Below are positions 23,768-55,370 of a DNA stretch of 64,000 bases, piece by piece (position 1 is the stretch's first letter; every line of letters starts with the position of its first letter). Source of the stretch: Oopsacas minuta (lineage: Eukaryota; Animalia; Porifera); the NCBI GenBank assembly GCA_024704765.1, contig JAKMXF010000266.1, forward strand, positions 248,001 to 312,000. The letters run 5' to 3'. The notes under the pieces are model-generated. The model did not search any database. It was not told the DNA's origin and saw only the letters and a program-made list of their open reading frames with translations. A program made the position numbers and the translations under genes.

Positions 23768-24024
23768 GTAATATCTGCTAGTTTTAGCCAACATTCATTT
23801 TTCCCCTTTTACTGGGTTTCCTTGTGTCTTGTGTTATTTTTTTAGAATTAATGTAAATTAATTATCCAAATCATAAAGATAATAATGGTTTGCATGCATT
23901 TTTATATAACAATTCATTATTGTTGATGTATTAGTAAAGTATTCTGGGTATTCAAATGCACACATTTGCAATTAGATACTATTTATGGACGTTCTGAATG
24001 TGAAAATGCATTCAAGGCAATTCA

Positions 24025-25038: not shown

Positions 25039-25403
25039 TAACACATGTATAACTTTCCATTTTGTTGTAGTATTTTCTTAGTTTCTAACAAATATTTGTT
25101 GTATATTATGTAATATAATCGTTTGTTTGTTGGTTAGATATCTGAATTCTCTATTATTTCAGTTCCTAACCAAACACTCATGCCAAACTTCGTTTATCGG
25201 GTTGACGAATTCTATCAGCTCATTCAAAATACAGATTACTTACGCGAACAGTACGACTGTATTGAAATTAAAATTATTAAACTTGAAATAAATATCTTTA
25301 CAAAACTATCTTACATAACAAATTGGGCTATATAAACACCAAGCAACGAATTTAACATGAACCCAATGTCAGATTACTATTAATGTTTGTTAATATCTTT
25401 TGT

Positions 25404-26708: not shown

Positions 26709-27062
26709 CTCAAATTCTAAATTTATTTTGACCTTCTTGCTATCATGTTATATATTATTTGGGCTGTGGTATAGGGATTGGAAATGTATATTTTGATTAT
26801 TGTAGACTGTGGTGATTTTCTTTGAATTTCCTTAATGAATTTGGCCTCAAATTGGTGATTACCAGTGGTATGCTGAGCCAAACTTTATCAAATATTAGAT
26901 TGACAATTATTCTGTTAATTAACTATGGTTAATATTGTACACAAAAGGCAAAGTTGATACTACCACAAAATTAAATACGTATAAAATCATGCAAATAATA
27001 GAATATTTATTAATAAATACGATAGCATATTCTCCGTAAATTTGAGGAGTGACATTATGACG

Positions 27063-28331
27063 TCATGTTACTTCAATGTCGATATACAACGGTTCTATTG
27101 TGGATTGTTCTGTGTCCGTTTGCCCTGGTTTCATTTCCAAATACGTGTGTTGATATGATTGGGTTGAATCCTCTACTTCATTCAAATTGTAATACAATTT
27201 GTCTTTCTTTAACACCTGCTTAATATCTCCATTGGGGTGTGGTGCCATATTGAGATAAAGTTCGTTGTTATCACTCTCTCCATTTTCTACTTTTTCCTGT
27301 TCTTCAATTGGTTTCTCACAGTGACACATTTTATACAAGTAAATTGCTATTCCAATCAGCACTATACCTCCTATAACACAAATAAATAATACTACTGATA
27401 ATGCTATTGCTAAGAATGTAATGTTGGATGTGGTGAATGATATAATAGTAACAGATGAGTTTGTTTGGGGGTTATCGGAACTTGAGGATGTTAGTATGTT
27501 AGTTTGAGTGCTGAATGGTGTATTCATCGTAGTTTGAGTGCTGAGTGGTGTATTCATGGTAGATTGAAAATTTATTGATGCTGTTTGAGTAGAAGTTTGG
27601 ATAAAATTTTCACAAATAAGAGCTATTACATCTTCTCCCATACATCTATTAGCACTATCATCTCTAGCTTCGCTTGTACAGTTAGGAAAACTCGTTACTC
27701 CATCACAGTTTATATTTACAAGCCCATATACACCCCGCCTATTTTCTACTTTTATCCTTTCCATTCCAGCTTTAGCTCCTTCAAATCCCAAACTCTGACA
27801 GGCTAGATTGGCTACATTGTTGTCCCAAATATTTCCATCATAGCAAAAATGCGCCCAAACGAGCTTTCCATCTGCAAAATCAACCAACTGTACAATTCTT
27901 CCGTCTTCTAACTGACGAACATCTCCTACATTGTAGCCTGAGTAAGCTAAGCATGTTAAGTCTATTACCCTATCAGCATCACGAAGTCGCAATGTATTAC
28001 AATTCGCAATAGTTGGAGGGAGATTATCACAGTCGATTTCGAACTCATTAAAGTTATCATTGTAATCTATTCTGAAATATTCAACCATTGCTTCTTCATT
28101 CGATAGATTTCTACAGGCATAGTATAGTTCCCTGTAATCAATCCCTTGTTCACGAATGTTATAATAATTCCCATTACTAGTCATTCCATCTGAACTGTAG
28201 AATATCTGCAAATACTCTTGACCTCCATCAACATGCTGTCTAAAACTGTACTGTTCTTGACCGAAACATTCCAATCCATATCTTAAAATACAGAATAATA
28301 TACTGTGTATCACACAAGTTACAAAGAACAT
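27063..28331 (-). CDS. Single-pass SRCR-like receptor, no kinase; ectodomain near-identical to the RTK at 52886
   Basis: Same architecture as neighbours; tail YLNM, YYNL, YLEM, LYIDI. Confidence 0.85.
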   Translation of the reverse strand: MFFVTCVIHSILFCILRYGLECFGQEQYSFRQHVDGGQEYLQIFYSSDGMTSNGNYYNIREQGIDYRELYYACRNLSNEEAMVEYFRIDYNDNFNEFEIDCDNLPPTIANCNTLRLRDADRVIDLTCLAYSGYNVGDVRQLEDGRIVQLVDFADGKLVWAHFCYDGNIWDNNVANLACQSLGFEGAKAGMERIKVENRRGVYGLVNINCDGVTSFPNCTSEARDDSANRCMGEDVIALICENFIQTSTQTASINFQSTMNTPLSTQTTMNTPFSTQTNILTSSSSDNPQTNSSVTIISFTTSNITFLAIALSVVLFICVIGGIVLIGIAIYLYKMCHCEKPIEEQEKVENGESDNNELYLNMAPHPNGDIKQVLKKDKLYYNLNEVEDSTQSYQHTYLEMKPGQTDTEQSTIEPLYIDIEVT

Positions 28332-28595
28332 TTATTAATCAACTCAATTACCTAGAAAGCAGCAATTTGAGTTAAAAGTACACCTAACATTATTGTTTAC
28401 CATATTCATTATCTTAGGAATCAAATTACCAAGTCAAATCACTCGCAGTAGAGTTAGTTTACGAGATTTATTATAGCTCAATGTGGCGCAATAGAAACTC
28501 TAGGCAAAAGATGATTTAATAGTAGAATATGGTTAATTATTAAATGTGTATCAATACGTAAACTTTACATGACAGTAGGGCCCGTAAGTTTGCTT

Positions 28596-29819
28596 TCAAT
28601 ATAGAGTATAGTATGGCTCTTTTGCAGAATCTTTTGTGCGGGCTTGCTCACATTGTCTAGGTTTCATTTCCAAATACGTGTGTTGATATGATTGGGTTGA
28701 CTCCTCTACTTCATTCACATTGTAATACAATTTGTCTTTCTTTAACACCTGTTTAATATCTCCATTGGGGTACGACTGCATCCTGAGATATGGGTCGCAT
28801 TCCTTTCTCTCTCCTTCGTTGCTTGTTCCTTCTACAATATCTCCTATAACAGGTGTTCTACAGTATCCAGATTTACATAAGCAGATAGCTATCCCAGTTA
28901 GTAAACTTCCTATCATGAGTATTAAAAGGACGATTATTACTATACTTATCCCGGTAATTATGTAAATCATATGCTGGTTTATTTGCGTATTGTTGGTGTT
29001 ATAAGAGGTTGGAGCATTGGAACTCCATGTTGTAGAGTCAGTACTAGATGGTGAATAACTGGGTTCGTTACTTGTTGTTTGCATTTGAGCTGTAGTTACT
29101 TTGCCTTCGCATGTAATAGCTATTACACCTTGAAAGCAATCTCCATCATCAAAACGCGTGTAGTCACTTGTGCATTGTAGGAAATCAGTGGCCCCAGTGC
29201 AATCAATATCCACCAGTCCATAAACGCGTTTATATTTTTTCCCAATTGTAAACTCCGCTCCATTATGATAGCCTAACTTCTGACAAGCAAGATTAGTTGC
29301 ATTCATATCCCAACCTGGATTTCTATCTACGCAAAAATGTGCCCAAATATATTTCCCAGGATATAAGCTTTTCAGTTGTACAATACTACCATCTTCTAAC
29401 TGTAGAATATCTCCCTCATTATATTGGCTGGCATCTATACATGTCAGATTAATAATTACGTCGTTTAGAGGTACAAATTCCACAAAACAATCATCATTGT
29501 TTCTCCGAGGCAAGTCACAATAAATTGCTGCTGAGACTTGATTTTCATCTTCAAACATGTCTGTACTAATATCTTTGGTTTGGAAATCGACGAATGATTC
29601 ATTTGATAGTTCGTTACAAGCAACAATTCCTCCTCTATAATCGAATCTATGCCCACTGACATTATACCATTCTTCTATTCCCATCTTTGGTTGTGAAGGA
29701 AAGGAGATCTGTAACACATTGTTTATTTGTCTGAAAATGATTTCCTCTTGCAAACTACCCGCTTGCAATTGCAATACATAACAAACGGTTAATAATACAA
29801 TAATCGATCTTGATGGCAT
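28596..29819 (-). CDS. Single-pass SRCR-like receptor, Tyr-motif tail, no kinase
   Basis: LQLEDGSIV..WAHFC..GWD..ATNLACQKLGY..YGLVDIDC; tail YLRM, YYNV, YLEM, YYTLY. Confidence 0.8.
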   Translation of the reverse strand: MPSRSIIVLLTVCYVLQLQAGSLQEEIIFRQINNVLQISFPSQPKMGIEEWYNVSGHRFDYRGGIVACNELSNESFVDFQTKDISTDMFEDENQVSAAIYCDLPRRNNDDCFVEFVPLNDVIINLTCIDASQYNEGDILQLEDGSIVQLKSLYPGKYIWAHFCVDRNPGWDMNATNLACQKLGYHNGAEFTIGKKYKRVYGLVDIDCTGATDFLQCTSDYTRFDDGDCFQGVIAITCEGKVTTAQMQTTSNEPSYSPSSTDSTTWSSNAPTSYNTNNTQINQHMIYIITGISIVIIVLLILMIGSLLTGIAICLCKSGYCRTPVIGDIVEGTSNEGERKECDPYLRMQSYPNGDIKQVLKKDKLYYNVNEVEESTQSYQHTYLEMKPRQCEQARTKDSAKEPYYTLY

Positions 29820-30195
29820 TTTGAATAATTTTTCAAATCAACATACTACACAACTTACTATATACTCTCTGAATTTGTAAATCCTTCATTTTGTGGTTCA
29901 TTTTCTCAAGAATTTAGTGAATGTTGATGTCAACGTAAAACATATCCCTCATTGCTGAATACTATTACGTATAAGAATGTTGAATAACTCTGCAACGCAC
30001 TCACTAATATCAACTCAAGGTTTGCTTGCATTTTTATTTTCCTTTTACGTATACCCTCAATATTAAGAATTTATTTATTTATTATTTATATGTGAACTCC
30101 TACGTATGCTGGTATGATTGGAAATGCTTTGGTATCATTCACCATAGTATACACATATAGGTTTACAGAATTAGAATTTGTAATTTACCTATCAC

Positions 30196-31473
30196 ATGGC
30201 GTCCCCGATCACTCATCCATCTTCATCAAAAGAGGATGAAGAATCAGAAGATCCATTCGCTCAGGCTGAAACCCAAATACACGAAGCCTTGGATGGTCCA
30301 ATAGAACTTCTTTCTGGGAGGAAAGACAAGTTGTTAGCAGACATAAATGCATTACGTAAAGATTACAATGCAAAGAAATTGACTTGCTCAGAAAGCCTAC
30401 AAGAGTTGAAATCATCTCGAGAGGAATTACTGAACATAACCAGCTTGATGAGAGAGAACCAAGCTCAGGGGGAAATGATGAAAGCAATCAAAAACTTAGA
30501 AGCAAGAATATCCGCACTAGAAGAGGCAGCTCCCCCTTTCCCAGAGATTAATTTCACCTGTGATACAGGGGAGTTAACTGATCTTATTCCTACTCTAGGT
30601 GAGATACGATTAGCCAGTGACCCTGAGCCTACTAGCCACGCTCCTGATCAGTCTGAATCCAATATTCCCATCGATAAAAAGCCTCCTAAATCTTTCGGGG
30701 TCATTGGCAGAAAACCAGGAGAGATTGACAATCCAAATTGCATCTGTGTAGACAATGATAATGATAAGATTTATATTACAGACATGGGTAAGAGTTTGAT
30801 ACATGTCTTCTCAATACAGGGCGAGTATCTACGTGAATTTGCCAAGGGGAAAATGTCAGCACCTCATGGAATAGTATCACATAATGGTTTTGTATACGTC
30901 ACTGACTTTGAAGTGAATACCATATTCAAATTCAAACATGAGGAATATGAATTTGTGAAGAAGACGAATTCTAGGACTCCTGATGAGCGTTTGAATCGTC
31001 CTCATGGTATAGCAGCAGACAGATCAGAATTATATATAGCTGAGCCCTTCAAACACCGTGTATCTGTGTACGGAACAGATCTGACGTATAAAGGCACTCT
31101 TTTGAGTGGTGCAATAAAGAAATCATTTTCCATCCGTGTTATGAATAGACATTTATTCGTTCTGCAGGTTAGAACGAATACAATAAAAGTTCTAGACTTA
31201 CAATCAGGTGATGTAAAGAAATCTTTGGTAATTGACGAAGATGGAATTCCGTTGTTCAATGCACACTCTTTTGTATTTGATTCTAATGAGAACGTATACA
31301 TCTCAAACCATGGCTGTAATTACCTGAAGAAAATCCCCAAGCATGGTGGATTCGTCCAGATGCTACAGCTAGGAAAATGGGGTGTGTCTGACATCAGAGG
31401 AGTAGCTGTTGACAAGGAAGATAGGTTGTTCGTACTGTTTGGGAAGGGACCCTTTAGTGTGGCTGTATTATAG
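30196..31473 (+). CDS. Coiled-coil + NHL-repeat protein 2, paralog of the 21064 gene
   Basis: Both start MASP and share ELK/ELL..I.SLM.ENQAQGE..K.I.NLE and NHL repeats (NPNCI.VD..IYITD, PHGI). Confidence 0.85.
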   Translation: MASPITHPSSSKEDEESEDPFAQAETQIHEALDGPIELLSGRKDKLLADINALRKDYNAKKLTCSESLQELKSSREELLNITSLMRENQAQGEMMKAIKNLEARISALEEAAPPFPEINFTCDTGELTDLIPTLGEIRLASDPEPTSHAPDQSESNIPIDKKPPKSFGVIGRKPGEIDNPNCICVDNDNDKIYITDMGKSLIHVFSIQGEYLREFAKGKMSAPHGIVSHNGFVYVTDFEVNTIFKFKHEEYEFVKKTNSRTPDERLNRPHGIAADRSELYIAEPFKHRVSVYGTDLTYKGTLLSGAIKKSFSIRVMNRHLFVLQVRTNTIKVLDLQSGDVKKSLVIDEDGIPLFNAHSFVFDSNENVYISNHGCNYLKKIPKHGGFVQMLQLGKWGVSDIRGVAVDKEDRLFVLFGKGPFSVAVL

Positions 31474-31660
31474 AAACACAGTTCTATAAGTTATTTTTAC
31501 TTCCGTGTCGCTTATAACTTTTATTCGAAAATTATTCTATTATAGTATAAACGTATGTTAATAATTACAGACAACAGTGAAGCATCCAAAGACGTGGTCT
31601 GTGGAAACGGGAAACTTCTAGAGATAGAGGGGTAAAAAATATCGAGAATTCCTAGTCCAA

Positions 31661-31720
31661 TATAAATGAACCTCCACTAACTGGTGTCTATGGAACCCCG
31701 TTTGTGGAGGTTACATTGTA
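31661..31720. mobile_element. Short TA-flanked hairpin element upstream of BUD13 (MITE-like)
   Basis: TATAAATGAACCTCCAC ... GTGGAGGTTACATTGTA imperfect inverted ends. Confidence 0.45.
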
Positions 31721-31882
31721 TATTATTGGGCAGATACTTGTTTCACTTATACAATGGACCGCGAAATAAATCTTACTAACGGTAAACATAGCTAATATTT
31801 TTCAAGAGTGACCTAATCGCCATATTTGCATTTATGTTGTAAATTAAGAGACTCGATTGATAATTCTAATCAAATAAGCTGT

Positions 31883-33292
31883 ATGGCGTCAAAACTAGAC
31901 TATTTAAAGAAATATCTAAGTAAGAGTGATGAGAAACAACTCCATTCGCAGATTGAGAAGGGAGAAAAGATAAAAATAAAAAAATCTACTAATTTTAAAA
32001 GACGTAAAAAAGTGTCTCAAACAGGAATTATAATCCTCAATCCTGAGAAAGAAGCAACTCAAGTTAGAGATTCTCAATCAAGTGAATCCTCTGACAGTGA
32101 TGGACCTACTGTAGTAGAGTCTAAAGTTCATAGCCGTGAGGCAATGAAGAGACTATGGAATCCTATTAATACAGATACAGTGACGTTATCGAGTGTTAGG
32201 ACTCGATATGATTCAGATGAAGGGTTACCTCCTTCCAGACAGAGACATGATTCAGATAGTGACATAGAAGTTACACGTGATAAATCTAAAAGCTCTGTCA
32301 TTAACTCAGAAAGTTCTCAAAAGAATCAAATAGACTCAGATAGTGATATAGAAGTTACAAGAAAATCTACAGAGACTAGACAACACAAACAAGAGAGTAA
32401 GAGAGATAGGAAGAGTAGATGGAGTAGAGATGAGAAAATGACGTCAGATAACTTATCATGTGCTGTGTTGTTACAAGCTAATGATACAAGTTAGTTAAAA
32501 TACGAAAATAATTACCTTCCCATCGGAAATATTCGATTCCTGAAATTCCACTTTCTTTGTACCAACGAATTTTTTATTTTAAAACCGAATATTTTCAAAA
32601 ATTCTGACCTCGCTATATGTTAATCCTAGCCTAAAACTTTGGTGGGGGGGGTATGCACAGGTATATAGAGAATTGTCAGAGCTATCCAATGAACCTATTT
32701 TTGAAGCTCCAGCTCTCAATTGACCGATTTAATTTTCTTTAGATCAGACAGTATATAGAGATAAACACGGCCACAAGATTGACTTACAGAAAGAGCTAGA
32801 ATTGAAAGCAGGACTGGATAAAGCGAAATTAGAAAGAGATGCTGAATTCAAATTAATGAAGTCTGGGATTGTTCAAGCTAAACTAAAGCAAGAAAAAGTT
32901 GAAGACTTTAAGAAAGAATCGAAGAAAGGCTTAAACCGATATAAAGGTGATGAATCTATGAATGAACTTCTCAAAGCGAAACAACTAATTGATGATCCAT
33001 TGTTAAAGATGAAAAGGAAAAAAGTTAAAAGTGAGTTATTCCATATAATTCGCGTATCACATTTTTGCCCCAAATTTCATCACATTTAATCAATCTAGAA
33101 AATCGACCTAAAAAGAGATGTAAGCCTACATACCAAGAACACTTCCCTAGCAACCGTTTCAATATAAGACCTGGATACAGATGGGATGGAGTAGATAGAT
33201 CTAACGGATATGAGAAGGAGAGATTCAGAATTATTAATGATAGAAAAGCTGATAATGACGATTATTATAAACTCGGAAATGAAGATCTGTAA
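31883..33292 (+). CDS. BUD13: BUD13 homolog (RES splicing complex); exons 31883-32489, 32743-33030, 33099-33292
   Basis: N-terminal [20 protein letters not shown] repeats, TVYRDK, IDDPLL, C-terminal [21 protein letters not shown]; phase-1 junctions match. Confidence 0.9.
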
Positions 33293-33468
33293 CAGTTATA
33301 CAATATTTTGATTAAATAATTATACGGTAGACTTTGAAGAGGTTGGTGAGTATGCGATTTACACGAACACTAGCCAGTCAAATGCTTACGAATATCCATG
33401 GTGTATTATAATGTAATTAATAACTAGCGTATTTAATAGTTTTTAATATTTGTTGCTAGCCTTAATAA

Positions 33469-34260
33469 ATGGATGATCCTCGAGAAAATCATTTTTTCCA
33501 GATTAGACTAGCGGAACAGGCAGAGCGATATGAAGAGATGGTACAGATGTTCAAACAGCTGATTTTAAAGGATCCAAAGAAGCTCACCGTAGATCAGAGA
33601 AATTTACTCTCAGTTGCTTACAAAAATGTAATTGGAGTACGCCGCGCTGCTTGGAGAATTCTCTGCTCCTTAGAAGCTAGAGAAATGGACAAGATGAAAA
33701 GGGAAGCGTCGAATGAGTTAGAAGTTATCGCTGAGTACAAGATCAGTATTGAGAAGGAGCTAGACGGGATTTGTCTGGAAATACTCACTCTTCTAGATGA
33801 ATCTATAATACCTAATGACGCAGAGAGTGAAGCTAGAGTTTTCTACTACAAAATGAAAGGCGATTACTTACGCTACAAAGCTGAATACAAAAATGGAGCT
33901 GAGAAGCAAGCAATAGCAGAAGAAGCATTGACTTCTTATACATCAGCAAACGAATTGTCAGTTGATTTAGTTTCAACTAACCCAATTAAATTGGGACTAG
34001 CTCTAAACTTCTCAGTATTCTACTATGAGATTATGAATGAACCAAAAGATGCATGTAAACTTGCTAATAAAGCGTTTAACGATGCTATTTCAGATCTTAA
34101 TTCTCTCTCCGAGAATGAATATAAAGACGCAGCTCTTATAATGCAGCTTTTGAGAGATAACCTGACCTTATGGACAGCTGATCAGCCTCAAGACGAGCCA
34201 GTCGAGCCTGTAGGGCCACAAGATGATGATGATGATGATGATGAGCCTAAACCTGAGTAA
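33469..34260 (+). CDS. 14-3-3 protein, intronless, with acidic poly-Asp tail
   Basis: AEQAERYEEM, RNLLSVAYKNVIG.RR.AWR, KMKGDY.RY, PIKLGLALNFSVFYYEI, IMQLLRDNLTLW. Confidence 0.98.
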   Translation: MDDPRENHFFQIRLAEQAERYEEMVQMFKQLILKDPKKLTVDQRNLLSVAYKNVIGVRRAAWRILCSLEAREMDKMKREASNELEVIAEYKISIEKELDGICLEILTLLDESIIPNDAESEARVFYYKMKGDYLRYKAEYKNGAEKQAIAEEALTSYTSANELSVDLVSTNPIKLGLALNFSVFYYEIMNEPKDACKLANKAFNDAISDLNSLSENEYKDAALIMQLLRDNLTLWTADQPQDEPVEPVGPQDDDDDDDEPKPE

Positions 34261-34718
34261 CATATTTATGCATTACCCTTGTGTACTAACTAATCTTACC
34301 TTATATTGTCAATCTCACTTATAAGCAGTATCCTATTCGTTATACCTAATACACTACAATTAATTCTGAAATATTCTGTAATACTGTTACATAGTGTATG
34401 TCTAATATATTACAGTAAACTTAACATTAATATGAACTTCATATCATAAGCAGAGAATGTTCTATGTAAATTCATTCAATTCGGTATTTACCAAGTTCTA
34501 CACTCTCAGTACCAAATTTCGCTCGAATATATTCAGTTAATTTCGAAAAATTAAGAGCCAAATCCGAATTTCCCTCATTTTACTGCGATAAAAAACTTCC
34601 ATTTTTCATGAATTTGAGATTTGGCAGTATTTCTTGTTATTTTGGGTACAACTCTCAATACAAATACTGGAATTCTTGTTCCAAATTTAATTATTTACAA
34701 ATACATAAGTTCACATAG

Positions 34719-39874: not shown

Positions 39875-40512
39875 AAATAATTTCTGTATGAATAATTATT
39901 ATTTGGTCATGAATCAATTAGAAATACAATATCTGCTACCTGTTTCCAATTCTATAGCACTTTTGGATATATGTTTGCTCAAAAAATCGGATTAAACTTT
40001 TTTGACAGAGCAACAATTATTGTCTCGAAAGTGTTATTTTATACTAATTATGTAACGAGCCACTTGACTTGATCAGTCCACGACAACATATGAAATAATT
40101 GCAAACTCTAGACAGACAAGCAAACTAATTAAATTCTAACAGAATAGGCTAATAATTACCAGTTAATTAAACCCAATCTGAGTTATATTATATCATTTGA
40201 CATAACTATAGTTGATACAGAGCTTTTCAATTAATTATTAGTCACAGTGTGCTTTCTAGCTATTTCCTAAGGATAATCTTTCCAGCTGATACAATAGTGC
40301 AATGTACCCAAATCTAATTTCACCTTACGCAATCAAACTATAATCAAAGAATGCTTAATGAGTTTACTGATATATCTATTACAGAGCTGAACAGGTGTTT
40401 GAGTCATTATCCTATTTATAAATCGACTTTTTGTATGAAGGAAGTGCTTGCAAATAGCGGCAAATTAGTATATATTGAGTTGTGTAGAAAATATTTAGTA
40501 TTATTTGGAGAA

Positions 40513-42271
40513 ATGGGATTGATATTTGTATTTCTTATTGTTGCAAGTGAACTACGTAGTGTATATGCAAATTCTACAGTAACTATCAGCCAATACATTG
40601 CCTTAATTGCGAAATTTAAAGCTACGATAATTTCAGGTTTTGCACTAACTTTGTTGCTTGCTATCTTATTGATCGCGTTTGTTGCTATCCTGTTTGTTGT
40701 TGTTCTTAGACGAAGGAGGATTCACAAGAAAATGATTACTCAAGTCGAGGATTCACGACCATCACCACCCGAATCATGCATGCTATACAATGTTAGGTCA
40801 TGTCTTTTACCGAATAACTACCCACAATGTAGCATTACAGAGCTTGCAGTTCTGAGCGCAGTTCCTACCTCAGAACTAAATCAATCCAGTAAATCATCTC
40901 TAGCTATTTATGAGTCGCTAAATTTCTCTCGAGATTTCATTGTCCCAACTTTCGAGCAAAGAACTTTTCGTAGTATTTCTGATGAGAATGAGACAGAGCA
41001 CATATACGTAGAGGTTAATGTAGATGAAGATACACCGTGTTTCATGTACGATGATTCTAGAGCTGTATCGCCGCCAGTAGAAACTATTAAAGAGATATTT
41101 TCGTTAATGTCCGTCAGGAGGTATAGGGAAATTAGTAGAATTGATTTAGTCGAGTATACAGAGCTAGGGAGAGGTAATTTCGCCGTTGTGCATAATGGGA
41201 TCTGGAAATCAATGAAAGGTGATATCCCAGTTGCAATAAAAAGTCTCAAAATGGAGGATGAAGAATCTTGTCTTAGTTTCTTACAAGAAGCATCTATTCT
41301 AGGTCAATTCAATCATCCTAATGTTCTCAAGCTATTCGGCGTAGTTACACGGAATAATCCGTTAAAAATGGTGACAGAACTGATGAGTAGCGGTTTGTTG
41401 GAATTTTTGAAGAACATTTTGAAGAATAATATCATAACATTCGATAGATTTAGTCCATATTTCCTGCGTTTCACACTGGATATTGCTAACGGCATGGAAT
41501 ATCTGGCTAGGAAACGGTATGTACATAGAGATCTGTCTGCGAGGAATATTCTCCTCACTCAGGAATTAAATTGTAAGATTGGTGACTTTGGATTAGCAAG
41601 AATGGTTGCTAATGATAACCAATATGAGCGAAATGTTGAAGAGTACATTCCCTTTAAATGGACTCCTCCAGAAGCTATTTTTTATAAGAAATATTCTGAG
41701 AAGAGTGATGTTTGGAGCTTTGGTGTTACCCTCTTTGAAATTTGGTCAGTAGGACAAGCACCTTGGCCTCATCATAACATCCAACAAGTGAGTTTGCATT
41801 ACGAATCATTTTATAGTCAACTCCCTGTATTACGAACACAGATATATGAAATACCCGGTTATATCGAACTCAGCTTATAGGCTAGTAATCGCGGCCTCTT
41901 GAGCTTCGATATAACGGGGGAGTTGACTGTACATCATTATTATATTACTATTGTTATTATTATTATAAGTTGGGAAAATTTACATGTATTTTGTATTACA
42001 GGTTATAGGAAAGATATCTGAGGGTGTGTTACTATACCCTCCCTCTGGTTGTCCCAGAGGGGTCTACCAGCTGATGACTAAGTGCTGGCATCCAGATAAA
42101 GAATTTAGACCTTGTTTCGCTGAAATAGCTTCGATCCTCCACACAAAAGGAAAGACTCTTCTTGAACGTGGAAAAACCCCTGAAGAAATGGTAGACTTAG
42201 GTCTGGTGCCTTCTGCTTCAAAAAAATTATTTATAGACCTACAAACTGCTTACCTTAATTCTACATCATAG
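40513..42271 (+). CDS. Receptor tyrosine kinase with almost no ectodomain; exons 40513-41787, 42002-42271
   Basis: ATG 40513 opens a signal peptide, about 20 aa, then a TM; GRGNFA, VAIK, HRDLSARN, DFG, FKWTPPE, SDVWSFG. Confidence 0.85.
41812..41931. mobile_element. MITE family A copy in the RTK intron
   Basis: TATAGTCAACTCCC ... GAGCTTCGATATAACGGGGGAGTTGACTGTA. Confidence 0.75.
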
Positions 42272-42873
42272 TTAATTATTGAGAAACTGTGTATGTACAA
42301 ATATTCATATGTATGTGATTGTAACTTTGCTGACACAATCATTTCTATGCTTGTTGCCACAAAATTTCAACTCAATTCGAATAATTCCAGCTTAAAGTTT
42401 ATTTTTGTACAAAAGTCCAATAATAAATCATTTACAGTTGCTTGTTAGAAAATTTGTGTGTTGGCTTACTAGAAATATGATTTAACCTTTGGGCAACTAT
42501 GCTTCATATTGTTTTCTATGACAGAACTTTTCTTGATTGATTATGTGGAGAATATTAATTTTTGATTACAATTTTAATGATAATCAAACCGGACACAGAT
42601 AACTAATCCAATAATTACATAACACTTACAATCAAGCTTTCAATTATTTCGATAACAAAACTAAGCATACACGATTGAACACAAGCGGAAAGCTATATCA
42701 AGAAGAGTTTTGTAATGAATGTTGATTTACTCAGAATTTATTGACCTCTGAATCATCTACGTGGGATAACGTTCCATTAAACTACTGGAGCTATCGTTCC
42801 TTCATCATTAACAAAGTATAAATACTGAATTCGTAGCCACAATAATATCAATACTAATTACAATTATTGCAAT

Positions 42874-45471: not shown

Positions 45472-45949
45472 TTAATGTATTATAACCTACTCTCAATTGT
45501 TCATAAAAGTACTAATATATTCATATACATTAATGTTTTGATTTATGAATTACGTGACTGCTACTTGTAATTATTCCTATTACTCGGTTGAAGAACATTC
45601 AAATAACTCATTTGGCGATGGTATAACTTTTACAAACACTTAGCTAAAACAATGGATTCATGTTATTTCCAATGGTGTATTTGGTTTGAATCATAACATG
45701 AATTTGAGGACTTTGCTAAAATTGCAAAAAACACTATCTAGAATACATAGATTGAGGTTAGATTCAATGTCATCAATTTTAATGACATTAAGAATAGTTC
45801 ATCAACTCTGAAGGCATCACAACATCTATGCTATAATGTCAACTACGTAGATAATAAATTGAATTTTCTGTATTTCACAGGGAAGTTTAGAGGCAAATAA
45901 TTAATCCGTATACATTATGAAAATATTACTTTCGCCTTATCCGGAGTTC

Positions 45950-45972
45950 GTATTAACTAGGTTCCACTGTAG
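45950..45972 (-). mobile_element. Solo terminal fragment of a CAGTGGAACC-type (Tigger-like) element
   Basis: Reverse complement reads TACAGTGGAACCTAGTTAATACG; partner end not found. Confidence 0.4.
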
Positions 45973-46183
45973 TATAATTATTTAGCGGTATCCTAATTTA
46001 AATAGTCCATATATAATCGTATAATTTACAAACCACATCCTTAATTAGCATCTGTAAGGCCGTCAGGCTATATTATCCAAAACAACCATAACCTGATTAA
46101 TGATTCTGCTAATAAATTATCAGATATTCCTTTGGATTAGAAACAATCATGGTTTGACAATCTTCTTAATTAAATATACAATG

Positions 46184-46190
46184 TATAAAT
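46184..46190 (+). promoter_or_regulatory. TATA box of the 46228 gene; paralogous TATATAAAA at 48089-48097
   Basis: TATAAAT about 40 nt before ATG, inside a conserved upstream block shared by both paralogs. Confidence 0.5.
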
Positions 46191-46227
46191 GGTGCGGTAG
46201 GTGACTAAATCATATTAACTGTCAGAT

Positions 46228-46597
46228 ATGTTACAATCTTTCATCTCTATTTTCTTTGCATTACAGGTCTTAATTTATGGACATTTACCATATGTTTCAT
46301 CTATGAGAGTGAGGTACGGCGAGTTGGGTACGCAAATTACCTTAACAAATTCAGATTCTTGGTATTATATTGCGGATCATAATTTTGGACCCAATGAAGC
46401 TTTTGTGATTTGTCAAGAATTCTCAGGAACAAGTATCGTTGATTCCTACACAAGCATAAGTCTCGATGATGATGATGATCTAATCGACATGGATTGTAGT
46501 GATTCGAACTCCCTAGATAATTGCAAATTTGATATAAGAAATGATGATGACTATATAAATGTGACTTGTAGGGAAGATACTTCAACAACAACAACAC

Positions 46598-46632
<35 letters not shown>

Positions 46633-46795
46633 GCACCTACAACAACAACACTTACTACTACTACTACTACACCTATAACAACAACACCTACTGCTACTAC
46701 TACTGCACCTACAACAACAACACCTACTGCTACTACTACTGCACCTACAACAACAACACCTACTGCTACTACTACTGCACCTACAACAACAACAC

Positions 46796-46835
<40 letters not shown>

Positions 46836-47460
46836 ACCTACAACAACTATATCAAGAACAGCAAGCACTGGATCATTGCATAGTGAAACTACAGTGGATT
46901 CCAGAACTACAGACTCTTCCAGCGAATTATTACTGGATGAATCTAGCATGATAATAATAGGGAGCATAACTTCTGCTACTATATTATCCGTCATAGTTAC
47001 AGTATCAATTATAACTCTCATATGTGTTAAGAGTTTAATTCATAAAATGGGAAAGAGAGTTGAAGAACAGCCTAACTTATCTCTAGAGAAGGGAATACAT
47101 GTGAAAAAGATCTCTGAACATTATAAAAACGGTCCAGCAATTCAACGACATCAACTTCTGGTTACCACCGGAAATAATATTGCAACTAGACAGCTGTCAA
47201 ACTTTTCAGAAGGAAATGGATATTATGCTAAAATACAAGGCTATTGTGATGTATCCACCAATGGTATAACGCATGAGTACAATAGGCATTCTCGAAACAC
47301 AAATGAAACTACACAAGCGAATTTGGAAGATGATATTTATTACAATATTGATGGAGACATTGATCCTCGGGTGGACACAAATTATGATCGCTTGAACCCC
47401 AACAATATACGTCCTCAAGATGATATATATGTAACTATGAGTGATAATTTTTCTCAATAA
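46228..47460 (+). CDS. Mucin-stalk single-pass receptor 1 (one degenerate SRCR module, Thr-rich stalk, Tyr tail)
   Basis: VRYGELG.QI..W.YI..F...EA..IC...C...C..INVTC; (ACT)n and 36-nt TTTAPTTTTPTA repeats; TM; YYNI, YDRL, YVTM. Confidence 0.8.
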
Positions 47461-48130
47461 TTATACTTTGATCTTGAACTTAAGACTTGTATATCATAAA
47501 ATGCGTAATTTCTGTTGTACATAATACTTGAATGTTTGAACTATTTTGATTTACTTGTACAATTACTAGTAATTATGATTTGTAAATGTTCTGTAATAAT
47601 ATTGAAAATTTATTAATTCTTGCAAATAACTCAATTGCCAGATTTTGTAGGACACATTTGATTTGGAATACGTCATGAGTATGAATTTGAAGATTTTTCC
47701 AGGAGTTGCAAAGCACTATACGTATATTGTAATTTTCTATATTTAACAGGAAATGTTTAAAATCAATGAGTTGGTTAATTATGAATTTTTGACTATATAT
47801 CTCTTAGAAAATATAATTCATATGATGCTTACAAACTTTCTCACTAGATTTTATTCTATTGTATATTATGTAGCAATTAATATGGTCCATAATTATCCGA
47901 ATCCATTTACAAACTATATCTTTAATTAATATCTGTAAGGTGGTCACTCTATATTGTCCAAAATAGCCACCAACTTTCAGTCATTATCCTAATCAAATTG
48001 GCTGATGCTTTATGGAGAACATTGCCTTATTAGAATCTAGTCTTGAATTACTTTAATAATCTGACACTCTTCTTAATTAAATGCACCATATATAAAACGC
48101 TGGGTCACTGAATTACATCAACTGTCATCT

Positions 48131-49351
48131 ATGTTACAATCTTTCATCTCTATTTTCTTTGCATTACAAGTCATATATTCTGTACATTTATCATTTGTTT
48201 CATCTCACAGAGTGAGGTACGGCGAGTTGGGTCCGCAAATTTCCTTAACAAATTCAGATTCTTGGCATTATATTTCGGATTTTAAGTTTGGGAAAGATGA
48301 AGCTTATGTGATTTGCCGAGAACTCTCACCAACAAGTACCTTTGATTCCTTCACCAGCACGCGTTTCAGAAATGTTAAAAGGTATCTAATCAGCATAGAT
48401 TGTAGACATGCGGGCTTTACTTATACTCTAGATAGTTGCGATTGCGATTTGCAAAAAATAAGAAATCTTTCCTTTATAAATGTGACTTGTTTAGATGATA
48501 ATTTAACTACACCTATAACTACCACACCTACTATTACTATACCTACTATTCCAACTACTATACCTACAACTACTCTACCTATTATTACTACATCTACTAC
48601 TACTACTACACCTACTACTACTACTACACCTACTACCATACCTACAACTACTGCAGCACCTACTACTACTACTACACCCACTACTACAACAACACCTACA
48701 ACTACTATACCTATTACTACACCACCTCCTCCTTCTACACCTACAACAACTTTATCAAGAACAGCAAGCACTGGATCATTGCATAGTGAAACTACAGTGG
48801 ATTCCAGAAGTACAAACTCTTCCAGCGAATTATTACTGGATGGATCTAGCATCATCATAATAGGGAGCATAACTTCTGCTACTATATTATCCGTCATAGT
48901 TACAGTATCAATTATAACCTGCATATGTAGCAGGAAATTATTGAAGAAAATGGAAAGGAGAGTTGAAGACCAGCCTCACATATCTGTAGAGATGGAAAAT
49001 CATGTGAGAAGGATCTCTGAACACTACCATGAAGCTCTCACAATTCAACGACGTCAACTTCAAGTTTCTAGCGAGCATGATATTGCATCTAGACAACTGT
49101 CAAACCTATCAGAAGTAAGTGGATATTATGATAGAATACAAGGCCATTGTGATGTATCCACCAATGACATAACTCATGAAAACAATGGGATTTCCAGAAA
49201 CACAAATGAGACTACACAAGCGCGTTTGGAAGATGATATTTGTTACAATATTAATGGAGACATTGATCCAACGATGGAAACAAATTATGATAGTTTGGGA
49301 CCTAGCAATACTCCTCCTCAAGTTGTTGTATATGCTAATTTATCTCAATAA
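48131..49351 (+). CDS. Mucin-stalk single-pass receptor 2, tandem paralog of the 46228 gene
   Basis: Shared signal peptide and near-identical RTASTGSLHSETTVDSR...IIGSITSATILSVIVTVSIIT; tail YDSL, VVYANL. Confidence 0.8.
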   Translation: MLQSFISIFFALQVIYSVHLSFVSSHRVRYGELGPQISLTNSDSWHYISDFKFGKDEAYVICRELSPTSTFDSFTSTRFRNVKRYLISIDCRHAGFTYTLDSCDCDLQKIRNLSFINVTCLDDNLTTPITTTPTITIPTIPTTIPTTTLPIITTSTTTTTPTTTTTPTTIPTTTAAPTTTTTPTTTTTPTTTIPITTPPPPSTPTTTLSRTASTGSLHSETTVDSRSTNSSSELLLDGSSIIIIGSITSATILSVIVTVSIITCICSRKLLKKMERRVEDQPHISVEMENHVRRISEHYHEALTIQRRQLQVSSEHDIASRQLSNLSEVSGYYDRIQGHCDVSTNDITHENNGISRNTNETTQARLEDDICYNINGDIDPTMETNYDSLGPSNTPPQVVVYANLSQ

Positions 49352-49984
49352 TTTAAAAATACACCTTTGATTTGCAAAAGTATCTGTAATTATATTTTAA
49401 CATTGTGTGGCAAATATATATTTCTTCCTAATAACTTAAAATACTAAGAAAAATTATCACTGTAGTTTTGTACATGGTTTAGGGTTAGCAATTAGACATT
49501 CTATCAATTTCCTTGAAATTTGTTTATCCAAATCGTTTGTGGTTTATAAAGGCTATTGCAACCTAATAATTACTCTGCAATTTTAACCAATACTACATTT
49601 TGTAAACCTTTTTATTTTTGTCATCCAATATTTACCAACGTTATAACTGACAAGAAAGTTGCTGGTTAATTAGAAAACAATTGTTTCTTAAAGTGATAGA
49701 GAATAGAGCTCTATGTACCACCATCATACACAAAGGCGAAATTCAATACTCATAAACTTTTTATTGATAATTATTGTCTAGAAGTGGTTTCCAACAGACC
49801 GACACTAAATACACATCGAAACCCAAATCTAGTATACTCCCAGAATGAATTATGCAACTACTCGTAATTATATCTGTTTTAAGTTCATTTACGCATAACT
49901 TTGTAAGTCAGTATAACTATAAATTAACCTAAGAATTTGTTCACTTACAAGTATTTGCTATTTCCAAGAATAATTGCCTGACTG

Positions 49985-52425
49985 ATGTATCTTTTTGCAA
50001 TAATAATTATATTAACTTCATTATTGTATAAACATTCCATTGCCCCAGACCCCGAATTTGCTTTCCGATTTATGGATGGTTTACAAATCCATTTTAAGCA
50101 AGGACGACATCTAAAATGGTACTATATTGATGTTGAAGATTTCTCATTTCATGTAGGAGCCATTGCCTGTCGGGACTTGTATAATACTTCTTTATACTAT
50201 TATTACTCTGAGGGACAAAAAACTCAAGTGCCGGATGGGCGAGTGAATATATACTGCAGTTCTGACTCCGTTTCCATTCAAAGTTGTCAAATTCTTCCAA
50301 TCGACAAAAATGCAATCGGTCTTAGTGTAAAGACGATATGTCATGATCCTAAGTTGCATAAAAATCCTCCAATAAGGCAATTAGCCGACAATAGTGTGTA
50401 TTTATTACACGAAATCAACCCCGAATCATCTGAAAATTTGTTGATTTGGGGAAAGGTCTGTTTCAATAATGATCATACAAAATCAGTTGCTTGTACAAAC
50501 TTGCAAAATGAAGATGTGATGGCTGCTGGGAGCATACAACATAGTGGTTATGAGCAGATCACATTAATAAACTTCACATGCGGTCCAGATGTATTGAAAC
50601 TCGAGGATTGTTCATACGAAATAAACGACGAATCAGATTGTGAAGATAATGGAGAAGCTCCACTTATATGTGATAATACAACTAATAGCACAACTACTCA
50701 AATTATCAATCCTATTGTTCAAACAAATACTATAACTACCAAGGGAACTTCAACCGCAAATGGAACTTCAACCACAAATGGAACTTCAACCACAAATGGA
50801 ACTTCAAATCCTCCTACTAACAGCAATACAACAACATTATCATCCCATACAAGCACTACTATACAATCTCTACCTATCAGCATGACGGTTCTAACTGCTA
50901 TTGCTACAACACTAAGTTTATGTGTTATCCTCACGATAATAATATTTGTACTGATATTCTTTGCACTCGTGATCACGATAAGGTTAAAAAGGCCAAAGGT
51001 TAGACAACAGAATGAGCACTACCAGAGTGGCACGAACCTAGACTATGAAGTCATAGAACCAGAAGTACAACAAGAATATTCCAACGTGGAAACGATTCAC
51101 AGATCAATCAGTATAACTTCTCAAAATAGATACCAACAATTAGTTCCACAAGAAGTGATCTCTGAGTTGGAAGCTATCTATTCAGTTAGATCTCTTGAAC
51201 CACCTGAAGATGGTATATACGACGATCTTCTCCACACAAATGATCTGGTAGTTCTCACTGTTGAAGATAGAGAATATATGAACATTTCTAATGAAGAGGA
51301 ACGAAAAAATACGTATCTACCATTTTCTTGTGAACTTCCCTGTTTCATTGGTCAGAATGAGTCACAAATTTGGGAGCCAGAAGAAACATTGAAAGGTATC
51401 TACGCTCAGATGGCACACAGCCGATATAGAGAAATAAATTCAAATGAATTGACAAGAAGAGAGCTCCTAGGTGAAGGAAATTTCGGCAATGTACACTCCG
51501 GTATATGGAAATCTCATAATCGAGAAGTTCCAGTGGCAATCAAGAGTCTAAAAGTTGAAGATAAAGATTCTAGTGTTAGTTTCCTACAAGAAGCAGCTAT
51601 CCTTGGACAATTCAACCATCCAAATATCCTCAAACTATTAGGAGTAGTCACTCTAACTACACCTCTAATGATGGTAACAGAACTGATGCGAACTGGACTC
51701 AAGGAATTTCTTTACATTATAGATAATTCAGATGCTTTCCCTATGGACCAGCTTGGAGAAGTGTTCCTCCGATTTACGTTGGAAATAGCAAGTGGGATGG
51801 AGCATTTAGTTTACAAGCAACATGTTCATAGAGATTTAGCAGCTCGGAACATCCTGGTCAGTCACAACTTAACTTGCAAGATCGGTGATTTCGGATTAGC
51901 TCGCGGCGCTAGAGTCAATGATGAATATTACCTATCACAGGGCGGATTAGTTCCAGTGAAATGGACAGCTCCAGAAGCTATGATCTTTAAGAAATACTCT
52001 GAAAGGAGTGACGTGTTCAGCTATGGGGTAACTCTATACGAAATATGGTCTATAGGAGAAGTACCATGGGCAGGAATTGATAACGAAATTGTAAGTACAA
52101 AATTTTCCATTCATTATAAGTGATAATTCCCTGTTATTTATTTATTGCATTGTAGGTTATACAAAAGGTGTGTAAAGGAGAAGTGATGGATCCCCCAGGA
52201 GGATGTCCTAGAAATGTCTACAAACTGATGGTTGACTGCTGGCACCCAGCTAAAGACTACAGGCCCACTTTTAAAGATATAATCAGTCGCTTACAGAAGC
52301 GAAATCAGATATTGCATAAAGGCAAGAATAACTCTAGATTAGGAGAAGCAAATCAAACAAATCGAGCATATTCTGATTTGCAACAAGTATACACCAAGTC
52401 TAAGCAAGTATATTTTGATATTTAA
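49985..52425 (+). CDS. SRCR-like receptor tyrosine kinase; exons 49985-52090, 52156-52425
   Basis: Two SRCR-like modules, NGTSTT x3 stalk, TM, GEGNFG, HRDLAARN, DFG, VKWTAPE. Confidence 0.9.
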
Positions 52426-52885
52426 GATTCGTCTTGTCATTACTATTTGTATTCATTTTTGTTGATAAATAACTTAATGTACTTGTGATAGAATTAATCT
52501 AGTTATATGTTGTGCGTATTATAAATAATTAAATTTACAAGAATTTTGATGAAGTATACTTAGGTCATCCAATCGATCTTGTTCCTTTATAGATAACTTT
52601 ACTTAATTGAATAAATGATTTAATGCGATTACCGGAGATGGCACAATGTTTATTATAACAATAATGAAAGGAATATTGCAGAGTTCAAAAGTATTCACGA
52701 AATGATTTATTGCATTAGTATAATTCGAGAAATAATGCATTACGAAGTGTGTTTAGACTGGTTTTCTGATTTCTAGGATACGTTGAATAGTGAATATAAA
52801 TGGTATAGAGATAGGTATACTTTCTGTTTAATATATAAAGTGTTGATTTCAAGGTAATTTGGAAAAAATTGAATTAATTAAGACA

Positions 52886-55370
52886 ATGAATTTTGTAACT
52901 TGTGTGATACACAGTATATTATTCTGTATTTTAAGATATGGATTGGAATGTTTCGGTCAAGAACAGTACAGTTTTAGACAGCATGTTGATGGAGGTCAAG
53001 AGTATTTGCAGATATTCTACAGTTCAGATGGAATGACTAGTAATGGGGATTATTATAACATTCGTGAACAAGGGATTGATTACAGGGAACTATACTATGC
53101 CTGTAGAAATCTATCGAATGAAGAAGCAATGGTTGAATATTTCAGAATAGATTACAATGATAACTTTAATGAGTTCGAAATCGACTGTGATAATCTCCCT
53201 CCAACTATTGCGAATTGTAATACATTGCGACTTCGTGATGCTGATAGGGTAATAGACTTAATATGCTTAGCTTACTCAGGCTACAATGTAGGAGATGTTC
53301 GTCAGTTAGAAGACGGAAGAATTGTACAGTTGATTGATTTTGCAGATGGAAAGCTCGTTTGGGCGCATTTTTGTTATGCTGGAAATAATTGGGACAACAA
53401 TGTAGCCAATCTAGCCTGTCAGAGTTTGGGATTCGAAGGAGCTAAAGCTGGAATGGAAAGAATACAGATAGAAAATAGGCGGGGTGTATATGGGCTTGTA
53501 AATATAAACTGTGATGGAGTAACGCGTTTTCCTAACTGTACGAGCGAAGCTAGAGATGATAATGCTAATAGATGTATGGGAGAAGATGTAATAGCTCTTA
53601 TTTGTGAAAATTTTATCCAAACTTCTACTCAAATAGCATCAATAAATTTTCAATCTACCATGAATACACCACTCAGCACTCAAACTACGATGAATACACC
53701 ATTCAGCACTCAAACTAACATATTAATGTCCTCAAGTTCCAATAACCTCCAAATCAGTTCATCAAATATTCCAGAACAAACCAATACTTCTCCAATTATA
53801 ACAACAACACCAAATACTCTAAACAGGGAGACAGACAATCTAATAGCCATAATTGCTGTCGTAGCTTCAGTGGTGGTAATCATAATAATACTATTCATAG
53901 TAGTATTCTTCATTGCTCTTTATTGCATTGTTAATAAGCGTAAGAAGAAACATGTTGTTGATGGTAGAGATACAAATGGTGATGTGCATGACTATAATAT
54001 TCGGTCTACAACAAATCTCACTGAATCTGGCCACACATACAATTCTCCAGGGCAATTGTTCGGTACCTCATTTACTCAATCAGGACAGAGTGGAGGAAAT
54101 ATTTATGAAATGAGTCCGTTGGAAGATGTTCAAGAGTTGTATTATGAAACATCAAATACTGATATACAAGAGGATATCTACTCAGTGTTGATATACGATA
54201 GTGATCAAGTTGTACCAAATTTCACTGACAGACAATACCATGAAGTTCAACACAAAACTGAAGAAGACAATCTCTATTTACAACCTAATGACGAACTTCC
54301 TTGTTTTATCTATCAAAATGATCCGATTTTCTGGCAACCCGAAGAGACGGAAGGTGGAATATATTCACAAATGTCAGAGAAAAGATATCGTGAAATCAAT
54401 CCAAGTCTTCTCATAAAATATGAACAACTTGGACAGGGAAATTTTGGATTTGTCCACAGTGGAATTTGGAATTCAAAGAAAGGTAGAATTCCTGTAGCAA
54501 TAAAAACCCTAAAAATGGAAAACAAAGAAACGAGCATCACTTTTCTACAAGAAGCAGCTATTCTAGGACAGTTCAATCATCCTAATGTCCTCAAGTTATT
54601 AGGTGTAGTGACTCTATCCAATCCAATAATGATGGTAACAGAACTATTGACCAGTGGATTGCTGGAGTATTTAAATGAAGTTAGAACGTCAGGTGAAACA
54701 CAAATACATCCACTAGGCAACAATCTGGCAAGATTTACGACAGATATAGCTCTCGGAATGCAATACTTAGCGTGCAAGAAATACATCCATAGAGATCTAG
54801 CTGCAAGGAATATCCTTGTTAGCCAAAAACTATCGTGTAAAATAGGAGACTTCGGTTTAGCTCGTATGGCAAAGGATAATGACTACTACGTGTCGTCTGG
54901 GGGGTTAATTCCATTGAGATGGACAGCACCAGAAGCCATCTTCTATAAGAAGTATTCAGAAAAGAGTGACGTTTGGAGTTATGGCATTACCTTGTATGAG
55001 ATTTGGTCTATAGGTAGAATTCCTTGGGATAAATTTACTACTGAAGAGGTAGGTTTTTCTTGTATACTTTGCTCACTTTTTCACGTCGTATTTATTTTTA
55101 TTATTTTCACAGGTTGTTGACAATGTCTCACAGCTAAAACTCCAATCTCCACCTACTGGATGTCCAAGGTTCATATACGAAATAATGGTAAGTTGTTGGG
55201 ATCCTAATAAAGACTCAAGACCAAGTTTCAACGAGATTTTACTAAGAATGAATTCAAATAAAAGCAAGATGTTATCGAGAGGGAACCAAAAGGCAGAGAA
55301 ACTAAATCTAGGCTTGGATCCTATCCTGAGCAAATTTCTCTTCATTGACCTACAGAATAAGTACCAATAG
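52886..55370 (+). CDS. SRCR-like receptor tyrosine kinase; exons 52886-55048, 55113-55370
   Basis: ATG 52886; GQGNFG, VAIK, HRDLAARN, DFG, DYYVSSGGLIPLRWTAPE. Confidence 0.9.

Follow-up and report, generated by a model that had tools for sequence, protein, structure and literature searches.

A kinase-less glass sponge receptor that very probably acquired its ectodomain by gene conversion from a nearby receptor tyrosine kinase

Two genes on opposite strands of a contig of the glass sponge Oopsacas minuta (Hexactinellida) encode receptors with nearly the same ectodomain and unrelated transmembrane (TM) and cytoplasmic parts. The contig is JAKMXF010000266.1 of assembly GCA_024704765.1, and the window analysed here is its 64,000-nt stretch from position 248,001 to 312,000, in whose coordinates all O. 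minuta positions are given. One gene, referred to as B, is kinase-less; the other, gene 52886, encodes a receptor tyrosine kinase (RTK). We believe that B is very probably a real and intact mosaic that arose by interlocus gene conversion, in which the 5′ 862 nt of RTK 52886 overwrote an ectodomain of B resembling that of its tandem neighbour, gene C. The contig encodes the exact B protein, and the public record likewise calls a gene of 422 aa. The features of the two genes, and of the tract that they share, are as follows.

27063..28331, minus strand: gene B, an uninterrupted open reading frame (ORF) of 422 codons for a kinase-less type I membrane protein
28260-28331, minus strand: B signal peptide
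27942-28259, minus strand: B SRCR-like module 1
27603-27941, minus strand: B SRCR module 2
27426-27602, minus strand: B Ser/Thr stalk
27339-27425, minus strand: B TM segment
27066-27338, minus strand: B tyrosine-motif tail
52886..55370, plus strand: RTK gene 52886, predicted 806 aa with two SRCR-type modules, stalk, TM segment and an intact tyrosine kinase domain
52886-55048, plus strand: RTK 52886 exon 1, 721 codons
55049-55112, plus strand: RTK 52886 intron, 64 nt, GT-AG
55113-55370, plus strand: RTK 52886 exon 2, 85 codons and stop, which completes the kinase domain
27464..28325, minus strand: arm 1 of the converted tract, codons 3 to ~289 of B, 97.68% identical to arm 2
52892..53753, plus strand: arm 2 of the converted tract, codons 3 to ~289 of RTK 52886

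The product of gene 52886 has the parts that define an RTK, namely a signal peptide, a single TM segment and a tyrosine kinase catalytic domain. The kinase domain scored 227.9 bits against Pfam PF07714 in a search in which the exons were not joined, and the motifs VAIK, HRDLAARN and DFG, as well as two adjacent tyrosines in the activation loop, can be read in it. No kinase domain was found in B in the Pfam search, and B itself is not an RTK. In the ectodomain, residues 158-241 matched the SRCR profile PF00530 with 31.3 bits in B and 28.2 bits in RTK 52886 (gathering cut-off 26.1), and six cysteines of module 2 (C163, C178, C209, C218, C230 and C240) are invariant across 21 family members. Module 1 has four cysteines only and is SRCR-like. 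An AlphaFold2 model of residues 1-243 of B (pLDDT 84.8, pTM 0.80) was compared with known structures. Module 2 (residues 131-243) resembled the SRCR domains of SCARA1, DMBT1, CD163 and MARCO (Z 9-10, root-mean-square deviation 2.0-2.9 Å), module 1 (residues 25-132) the divergent SRCR domains of TMPRSS2 and enteropeptidase (Z 6.6-7.9), and both modules together avian Pit54 SRCR1-2 (Z 10.4 over 192 residues). Since module 2 agrees with SRCR domains in profile, cysteines and fold, and the fold of module 1 matches divergent SRCR domains, the shared ectodomain is predicted to consist of an SRCR-like domain followed by an SRCR domain. Within the window the family built on this ectodomain comprises the kinase-less genes X22733, A (25404), B and C (28596) and the RTKs 42874, 49985, 52886 and 55821.

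A repeat search of the 26-55 kb region returned a sole inverted pair, 27454-28332 against 52885-53763, 879 nt long and 97% complementary. A base-by-base comparison narrowed this to 27464-28325 on the minus strand and 52892-53753 on the plus strand, which align over 862 nt without a gap and with 20 mismatches (97.68% identity). No third copy of the 862-nt tract is present within the 64-kb window. The arms are inverted and 24.5 kb apart, and their first base lies at most 6 nt from both start codons. At the 5′ side the limit is codon 3 of both genes, codon 2 differing at all three bases; at the 3′ side it falls in the Ser/Thr stalk, near codon 288-290. The tract thus holds the signal peptide, both SRCR-type domains and the proximal stalk, and stops before the TM segment. 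The two ectodomains are 96% identical in amino acids over residues 1-287. Downstream of the tract B has no significant similarity to RTK 52886 (z 0.8) and strong similarity to gene C (z 81). A gapped alignment that seemed to carry homology past the 3′ boundary into the stalk looked promising but was rejected, since the z of 0.8 is not significant and the sequence there is of low complexity. The original prediction had described ~860 bp of ~98% identity, inverted and 25 kb apart, with about 12 amino acid changes in ~285 residues, only one of them in module 1 and most in module 2, and an identity that ended in the stalk before a TM segment and tail unrelated to the RTK and partly shared with gene 28596. 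All of this was borne out, the figures being right to within a few bases.

Upstream of the tract one further region is listed tentatively.

28346..28494, minus strand: sequence upstream of B that weakly resembles, with gaps, ~52708-52860 upstream of RTK 52886; a tentative older layer

The 260 nt upstream of B aligned to the sequence upstream of RTK 52886 with a Smith-Waterman score of 43, which none of 300 shuffles reached, while 24 control promoter pairs scored at most 33. The similarity was limited to RTK 52886, none being found to 12 other family promoters, and by blastn it was not significant. It is possible, but no more, that this region is a still older layer of the same copying event.

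To establish the direction of exchange, use was made of a related sponge (assembly ENA ERZ25069837), in which orthologs are 51-79% identical. Two more genes of the window enter the comparison.

28596..29819, minus strand: gene C, next to B in the tandem array, a kinase-less SRCR receptor from which a patch in the B tail came
25404..26708, minus strand: gene A, which completes the tandem trio of kinase-less SRCR receptors and has a tail of the same tyrosine-motif family

A locus of the relative, L003, is collinear with the window in the order NHL, C, B-position gene, A, adaptor, X22733, NHL, 478-aa gene and Ank; between 22733-31473 of the window and L003:6766-21227 the order of nine genes is perfectly conserved as a mirror image. 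The A/B/C trio and the RTK cluster occupy opposite strands in both species, ~45 kb apart in the relative and with 24.5 kb from B to RTK 52886 in O. minuta. The relative's B-position gene combines a C-like ectodomain with a B-like tail. In a maximum-likelihood tree of 29 ectodomains, A joined its ortholog (96/99), C joined its ortholog (99/96) and the relative's B-position gene fell in the C clade (99/98). B, in contrast, paired with RTK 52886 (100/100), and the clade that holds this pair (95/98) otherwise consists of RTKs of the relative and the kinase-less partners of these RTKs. Forcing B into the clade of C and the B-position gene cost 40.6 log-likelihood units and was rejected by the approximately unbiased test (p=0.0005). 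Over its kinase half, RTK 52886 shares 61-63% identity with the RTKs of the relative in that same clade and 42-48% with other types; since this half groups with the same RTKs of the relative as the ectodomain does, the domain combination of RTK 52886 is ancestral. Because the B-position ectodomain is C-like and the B ectodomain is nested among RTKs, it follows that an RTK-type ectodomain overwrote the one that B had. The reverse direction, with B as donor and the RTK as the chimera, had been suggested by identities within the window (the ectodomain is 43% identical to A and 38% to C, versus 23-34% to other RTKs). It was ruled out because the relative's 52886-type RTKs already carry this type of ectodomain and its B-position gene does not. 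The marks by which interlocus gene conversion is recognised were found, that is, a sharp tract between unrelated or diverged flanks (97.7% over 862 nt, z 0.8 downstream and weak, gapped similarity upstream), and conflicting phylogenies of tract and flank together with an unconverted positional ortholog. The recent shuffling proposed in the original prediction is therefore supported by synteny, tree and test, which add that the kinase-less gene was the recipient.

The tail of B contains a second conversion tract.

27127..27238, minus strand: patch in the B tail, 112 nt with 3 mismatches, 97% identical to C 28660-28771

The patch encodes the block from GDIKQVLKK to YLEMKP and covers the YYN and YLEM motifs. 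This block is present in C and in the C ortholog and absent from the relative's B-position gene, so that it is native to the C lineage and was copied from C into B. The start and end of the B tail (the juxtamembrane part, PGQ... and EPLYxDI) match the relative's B-position gene. The prediction that B bears the tail of its neighbour therefore holds for the 112-nt patch and fails for the remainder, since the tail is mostly B's own and orthologous to the relative's gene. As read from these alignments, B is a mosaic of three sources: a 5′ part derived from the RTK, a TM segment and tail of its own, and a patch from C.

We also analysed how the differences are distributed along the tract. Between codons 3 and 287 the two genes differ at 19 nucleotides and 12 amino acids, with one replacement in module 1 (N55D), one beside the last cysteine of module 1 (T126I), seven in module 2 and three in the stalk. 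Codons 3-125 contain a single difference in 369 nt, while codons 126-287 contain 18 in 486 nt (~4%; Fisher p=0.0006), and synonymous differences are confined to the 3′ part of the tract. Because the 5′ part is near-identical, the 3′ part is diverged and synonymous differences occur only in the latter, the pattern indicates at least two exchanges of different age, and not selection that spared module 1. The small number of changes in module 1 was correctly counted in the original prediction, and we read its cause as a younger, nested exchange. Nor does the event look like a single one, since the uneven divergence suggests that exchange was repeated. The NG86 estimates for codons 3-287 were dS 0.039 and dN 0.019 (dN/dS 0.48; 0.46 for the 3′ part). 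Positive selection on module 2 was considered and rejected, because ratios of 0.46-0.48 are not significant and the uneven spread is an effect of age. The replacements avoid invariant positions and lie mostly in columns that vary across the family.

The reality of both copies was checked against Logan contigs, which were built with a different assembler from three read sets of the source sample; these are short-read contigs and none spans the whole tract. The published assembly was made from PacBio and Illumina reads with SPAdes (BioProject PRJNA761294; PMC10280926). The Logan contigs break exactly at 27464 and 28325, with two continuations at each break, one into the B flank and one into the RTK flank. 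In read set X2 the depths of the two continuations were 69.6 versus 78.2 at the 3′ break and 86.2 versus 76.9 at the 5′ break. On the B side, a contig running from the tail into the tract (27189-27524) showed no difference from B, five B-specific variants included, and a second contig covered 28296-28689. On the RTK side, the loose ends of the continuations were the RTK upstream sequence and the RTK stalk. The tract contig was ~1.2-3 times deeper than the flanks. Among 15 other letters found in tract contigs, 12 were exactly the RTK variant at sites where B and the RTK differ and three were extra variants. The latter, at 27582, 27743 and 28064 (T>C, T>C and A>C), lie at sites without a B/RTK difference and may be alleles of one copy or errors. 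A read set with the label of another organism (X5) gave four short fragments of low depth, too little to use. In these contigs no mis-join was seen at either locus. Their pattern is the one that a genuine repeat of two copies gives in a de Bruijn graph, and a mis-join at the tract is unlikely because both junctions of both copies occur at similar depth in independent contigs.

The tail of B has 91 aa and carries two YxxM motifs, the first of which, YLNM, is of the YxNM type, one YxN motif and a C-terminal YxxI/L motif; the four motif tyrosines are Y359, Y380, Y397 and Y416. Both YxxM sites are kept in five of the six tails of A, B, C and their orthologs, the A ortholog lacking the second, at an overall identity of only 40-61%. 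A word search with residues 330-422 of B matched only B and C, which says nothing on the wider tail family. The last motif of B, EPLYIDI, has proline at position -2 and is not a strict immunoreceptor tyrosine-based inhibitory motif (ITIM). No charged residue was found in the TM segment of B. B has kept its ORF, signal peptide and tail motifs intact, together with each of the ten cysteines that do not vary in the family. A juxtamembrane YxxM (GIYSQM or GIYAQM) is conserved in every RTK of the family, and most of them also have YxN. A box of the form LPCFIYQND...GIY(S/A)QM, with both motifs, stands just before the kinase domain at 54343-54366 and at equivalent positions in all family RTKs. We had considered that the RTK lacks docking sites and that B supplies them; this is false, the family RTKs having their own YxxM and YxN.

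Kinase-less counterparts of RTK ectodomains are also found in the related sponge. At L001:10001-13603 the kinase-less gene P0007 lies directly upstream of the RTK P0008 on the same strand, and the two share a tract of 85-100% nucleotide identity that is limited to the ectodomain, from ~40 nt after the ATG to the end of the SRCR domain. P0007 has a TM segment like that of 49985-type RTKs and a tail of ~40 aa. P0002 and P0003 are similar kinase-less twins with short tails of ~40 aa, and another kinase-less gene of the relative pairs with a 49985-type RTK. Reshuffling extends to the RTKs themselves. Those at L004:13036-15036 and L004:16092-17996 join a K55821-type ectodomain to a K52886-type kinase half, with kinase identities of 57-60%, compared with 45-46% for true 55821-type kinases. 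The ectodomain tree requires at least five switches between kinase-bearing and kinase-less forms. On the evidence of these alignments and this tree, the relative evolved kinase-less twins of its RTKs independently. Two truncated RTK copies, at L004:8154-9626 and L004:18941-19669, were also observed. One ends within the N-lobe of the kinase and the other in the stalk, and both probably represent pseudogenes or else proteins that are secreted or act as decoys.

Three further genes in the O. minuta window belong to the family as well. The genes at 46228-47460 and 48131-49351 form a tandem pair (83-84% nucleotide identity) with module 1 only, a long Thr/Pro mucin stalk, a TM segment and a tyrosine-rich tail, and their mucin repeats make up the large D1/D2 repeat families. 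At 40351-41880 a family RTK has a signal-anchor-like N-terminus and a TM segment and is without an SRCR ectodomain.

What B does can be suggested from its parts. Because the ectodomains are 96% identical, B and RTK 52886 probably bind the same or a near ligand. Their signalling would differ, the kinase of RTK 52886 looking active and B having just a short tail with tyrosine motifs. Such a ligand would co-cluster B with RTK 52886 or another tyrosine kinase. The tail of B would then be phosphorylated in trans, which requires a tyrosine kinase because B has no catalytic activity, and the RTK with the same ectodomain would be the obvious candidate. The phosphorylated YxxM and YxN motifs would recruit SH2 effectors of the PI3K-p85 or Grb2 type, an assignment that follows from general SH2 specificities, and the outcome would be a diversified or tuned RTK output. 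This mode of action for B, as a kinase-less co-receptor or substrate, is a plausible proposal that we put forward tentatively. The conversion mosaic together with co-receptor function is, with moderate confidence, the explanation that we consider best overall.

Several observations weigh against it. Which of the 20 variants belongs to which copy is taken from the published assembly, because the Logan contigs, which are short-read only, mix the variants. The RTKs carry their own conserved YxxM and YxN, so that B is not needed for docking; it is therefore more cautious to speak of tuning or diversification. Ligand binding may differ between the two ectodomains, as residue 165 is Asp in B (codon 27837-27839) and Ala in the RTK (codon 53378-53380). 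In phmmer alignments this residue corresponds to D1020 of SALSA SRCR8, and the position of D1019 is Tyr164 in both copies. In SALSA/DMBT1 the aspartate D1020 belongs to the cation site, and its mutation to Ala abolishes the binding of ligand (PMC7043408). The acidic site set of SALSA consists of D1019, D1020, D1058, D1059, N1081 and E1086, of which the residues other than D1019 and D1020 were aligned by eye only. Finally, dN/dS of 0.48 is not significantly below 1 (Fisher p=0.23), a value compatible with relaxed or neutral evolution of one copy, and duplication, truncation and reshuffling are rampant in both species, so that such a twin could arise unselected.

The last two points lead to the main rival, in which the twin arose neutrally in a family that recombines very readily. 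According to this explanation it is one of many accidents of frequent ectopic conversion and duplication; B would have the function of A and C, if any, and its likeness to the RTK would serve no paired role and be lost by decay or overwriting. The patch that B took from C, the relative's K55821/K52886 hybrid RTKs and its several truncated copies are what such a family would produce, and most of the replacements lie in family-variable columns. However, the tract records at least two exchanges of different age, spans the whole ligand-facing part and ends before the TM segment, B has kept its ORF, signal peptide, invariant cysteines and tail motifs, and the relative has kinase-less twins of independent origin. 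We regard a neutral origin as possible, though doubtful.

It is less likely that B is a decoy or dominant-negative receptor, which would dampen RTK signalling by sequestering ligand or by dimerising unproductively with the RTK, in the manner of truncated Trk isoforms or decoy receptors. B does present the same ectodomain without a kinase, and the ~40-aa tails of P0002, P0003 and P0007 are decoy-like. However, four tyrosine motifs have been retained in the 91-aa tail of B and are shared with A, C and the orthologs of the other species; a pure decoy would not need them, and the conserved motifs as read here argue against one.

It is very unlikely that the arms belong to an invertible segment, in which they mediate inversion of the 24.5-kb spacer and conversion is a side-effect of recombination. 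The arms are inverted, 97.7% identical and close to both start codons. As they start at codon 3, B and the RTK would exchange promoters in an inversion, and both proteins would stay as they are. However, there is no read evidence for the alternative orientation, on which contigs shorter than an arm cannot tell, and the relative has the same inverted cluster arrangement without the repeat. Least probable of all is an assembly or phasing artefact (the RTK 5′ part misplaced before the B tail, or two alleles assembled as two loci): an 862-nt repeat that no short-read contig spans, with mixed variant phasing, would invite one, but both junctions of both copies occur at comparable depth in three read sets put together by a different assembler, the tract is deeper than its flanks, a contig links the B tail to five B-specific variants, PacBio reads went into the assembly, and the 20 differences include 12-13 non-synonymous ones in an open frame.

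The preferred explanation, a conversion mosaic with a co-receptor function, can be compared with three kinds of known receptor. SRCR domains are candidate modules for the recognition of microbes or molecular patterns and are hugely expanded in sponges. Module 2 agrees in Pfam score, six cysteines and fold with SRCR receptors such as CD163, CD5/CD6, DMBT1/SALSA, MARCO, SCARA1/5 and avian Pit54. Unlike in these, the cysteines of module 1 number just four, and of the acidic residues at the SALSA cation site only a part appears to be present. To our knowledge no vertebrate RTK has an SRCR ectodomain. The paper on the O. minuta genome contains no mention of SRCR or of tyrosine kinases (PMC10280926), and in the literature searched no paper combining 'Porifera' and 'paired receptors' was found.

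A second comparison is with ErbB2/ErbB3, a kinase and a kinase-inactive docking co-receptor, and with CD28 and DAP10, whose tails contain YMNM and YINM, respectively. B resembles these in being catalytically inert and in having several YxxM motifs, one of them YxNM, that a partner kinase must phosphorylate. Unlike ErbB3, which retains an inactive kinase domain along with several YxxM motifs, B has two YxxM motifs and no pseudokinase or other kinase-like domain, and its heteromerisation is only assumed. Also unlike ErbB2/ErbB3, the sponge pair comes from conversion of the ectodomain and not from an old whole-gene duplication.

The third comparison is with paired receptors, which are regarded as a hallmark of vertebrate immune clusters (KIR, LILR, Siglec and CEACAM). 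SIGLEC11 and SIGLEC16 are arranged head-to-head ~9 kb apart and have undergone fragmented, repeated conversion of the part that encodes the ectodomain (PMC5701461); similar pairs are KIR2DS4/KIR3DL2 (PMC2768862) and those of the CEACAM1/CEACAM3 type (PMC2832619, PMC5112662). The likeness lies in nearby genes of opposite orientation whose ectodomains are kept near-identical by repeated conversion and whose TM and cytoplasmic parts are unrelated. Of the features used to define paired receptors (PMC5701461), ectodomain homology with divergent signalling parts is found here (96% of amino acids over residues 1-287). Another, opposite signalling roles in which an ITIM tail stands against a charged TM segment with an adaptor bearing the immunoreceptor tyrosine-based activation motif (ITAM), is not, as B has YxxM, YxN and YxxI and its partner is a kinase. 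Unlike the vertebrate pairs, the sponge pair has two SRCR-type modules in place of Ig domains, sets an intrinsic tyrosine kinase against a YxxM/YxN docking tail instead of ITIM against ITAM adaptor, and has no charged TM residue in B for adaptor pairing. Moreover, the sponge genes are intronless in the converted part, and the host is a glass sponge without defined immune cells. B and RTK 52886 may thus work like a paired receptor without being a canonical member of that class.

The locus shows the same process of conversion, cleanly and in datable form, in an animal lineage that was among the earliest to branch off, with an RTK as one half of the pair. It offers a concrete pair, with 20 diagnostic sites, 12 amino acid differences and four tail tyrosines, for asking how sponge SRCR receptors signal, whether kinase-less twins tune or divert RTK output, and whether conversion or selection maintains the match. 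That glass sponges have a true paired-receptor logic, in which an SRCR RTK and a docking-tail twin are kept matched by recurrent, ectodomain-limited conversion under selection, a solution that would have evolved a second time in the related sponge, is a tentative idea that we would not call likely. If it were true, paired receptors would be an ancient and general way for animals to tune the recognition of microbes or self and not a speciality of vertebrate immunity, and the activating half of the sponge pair would be an RTK.

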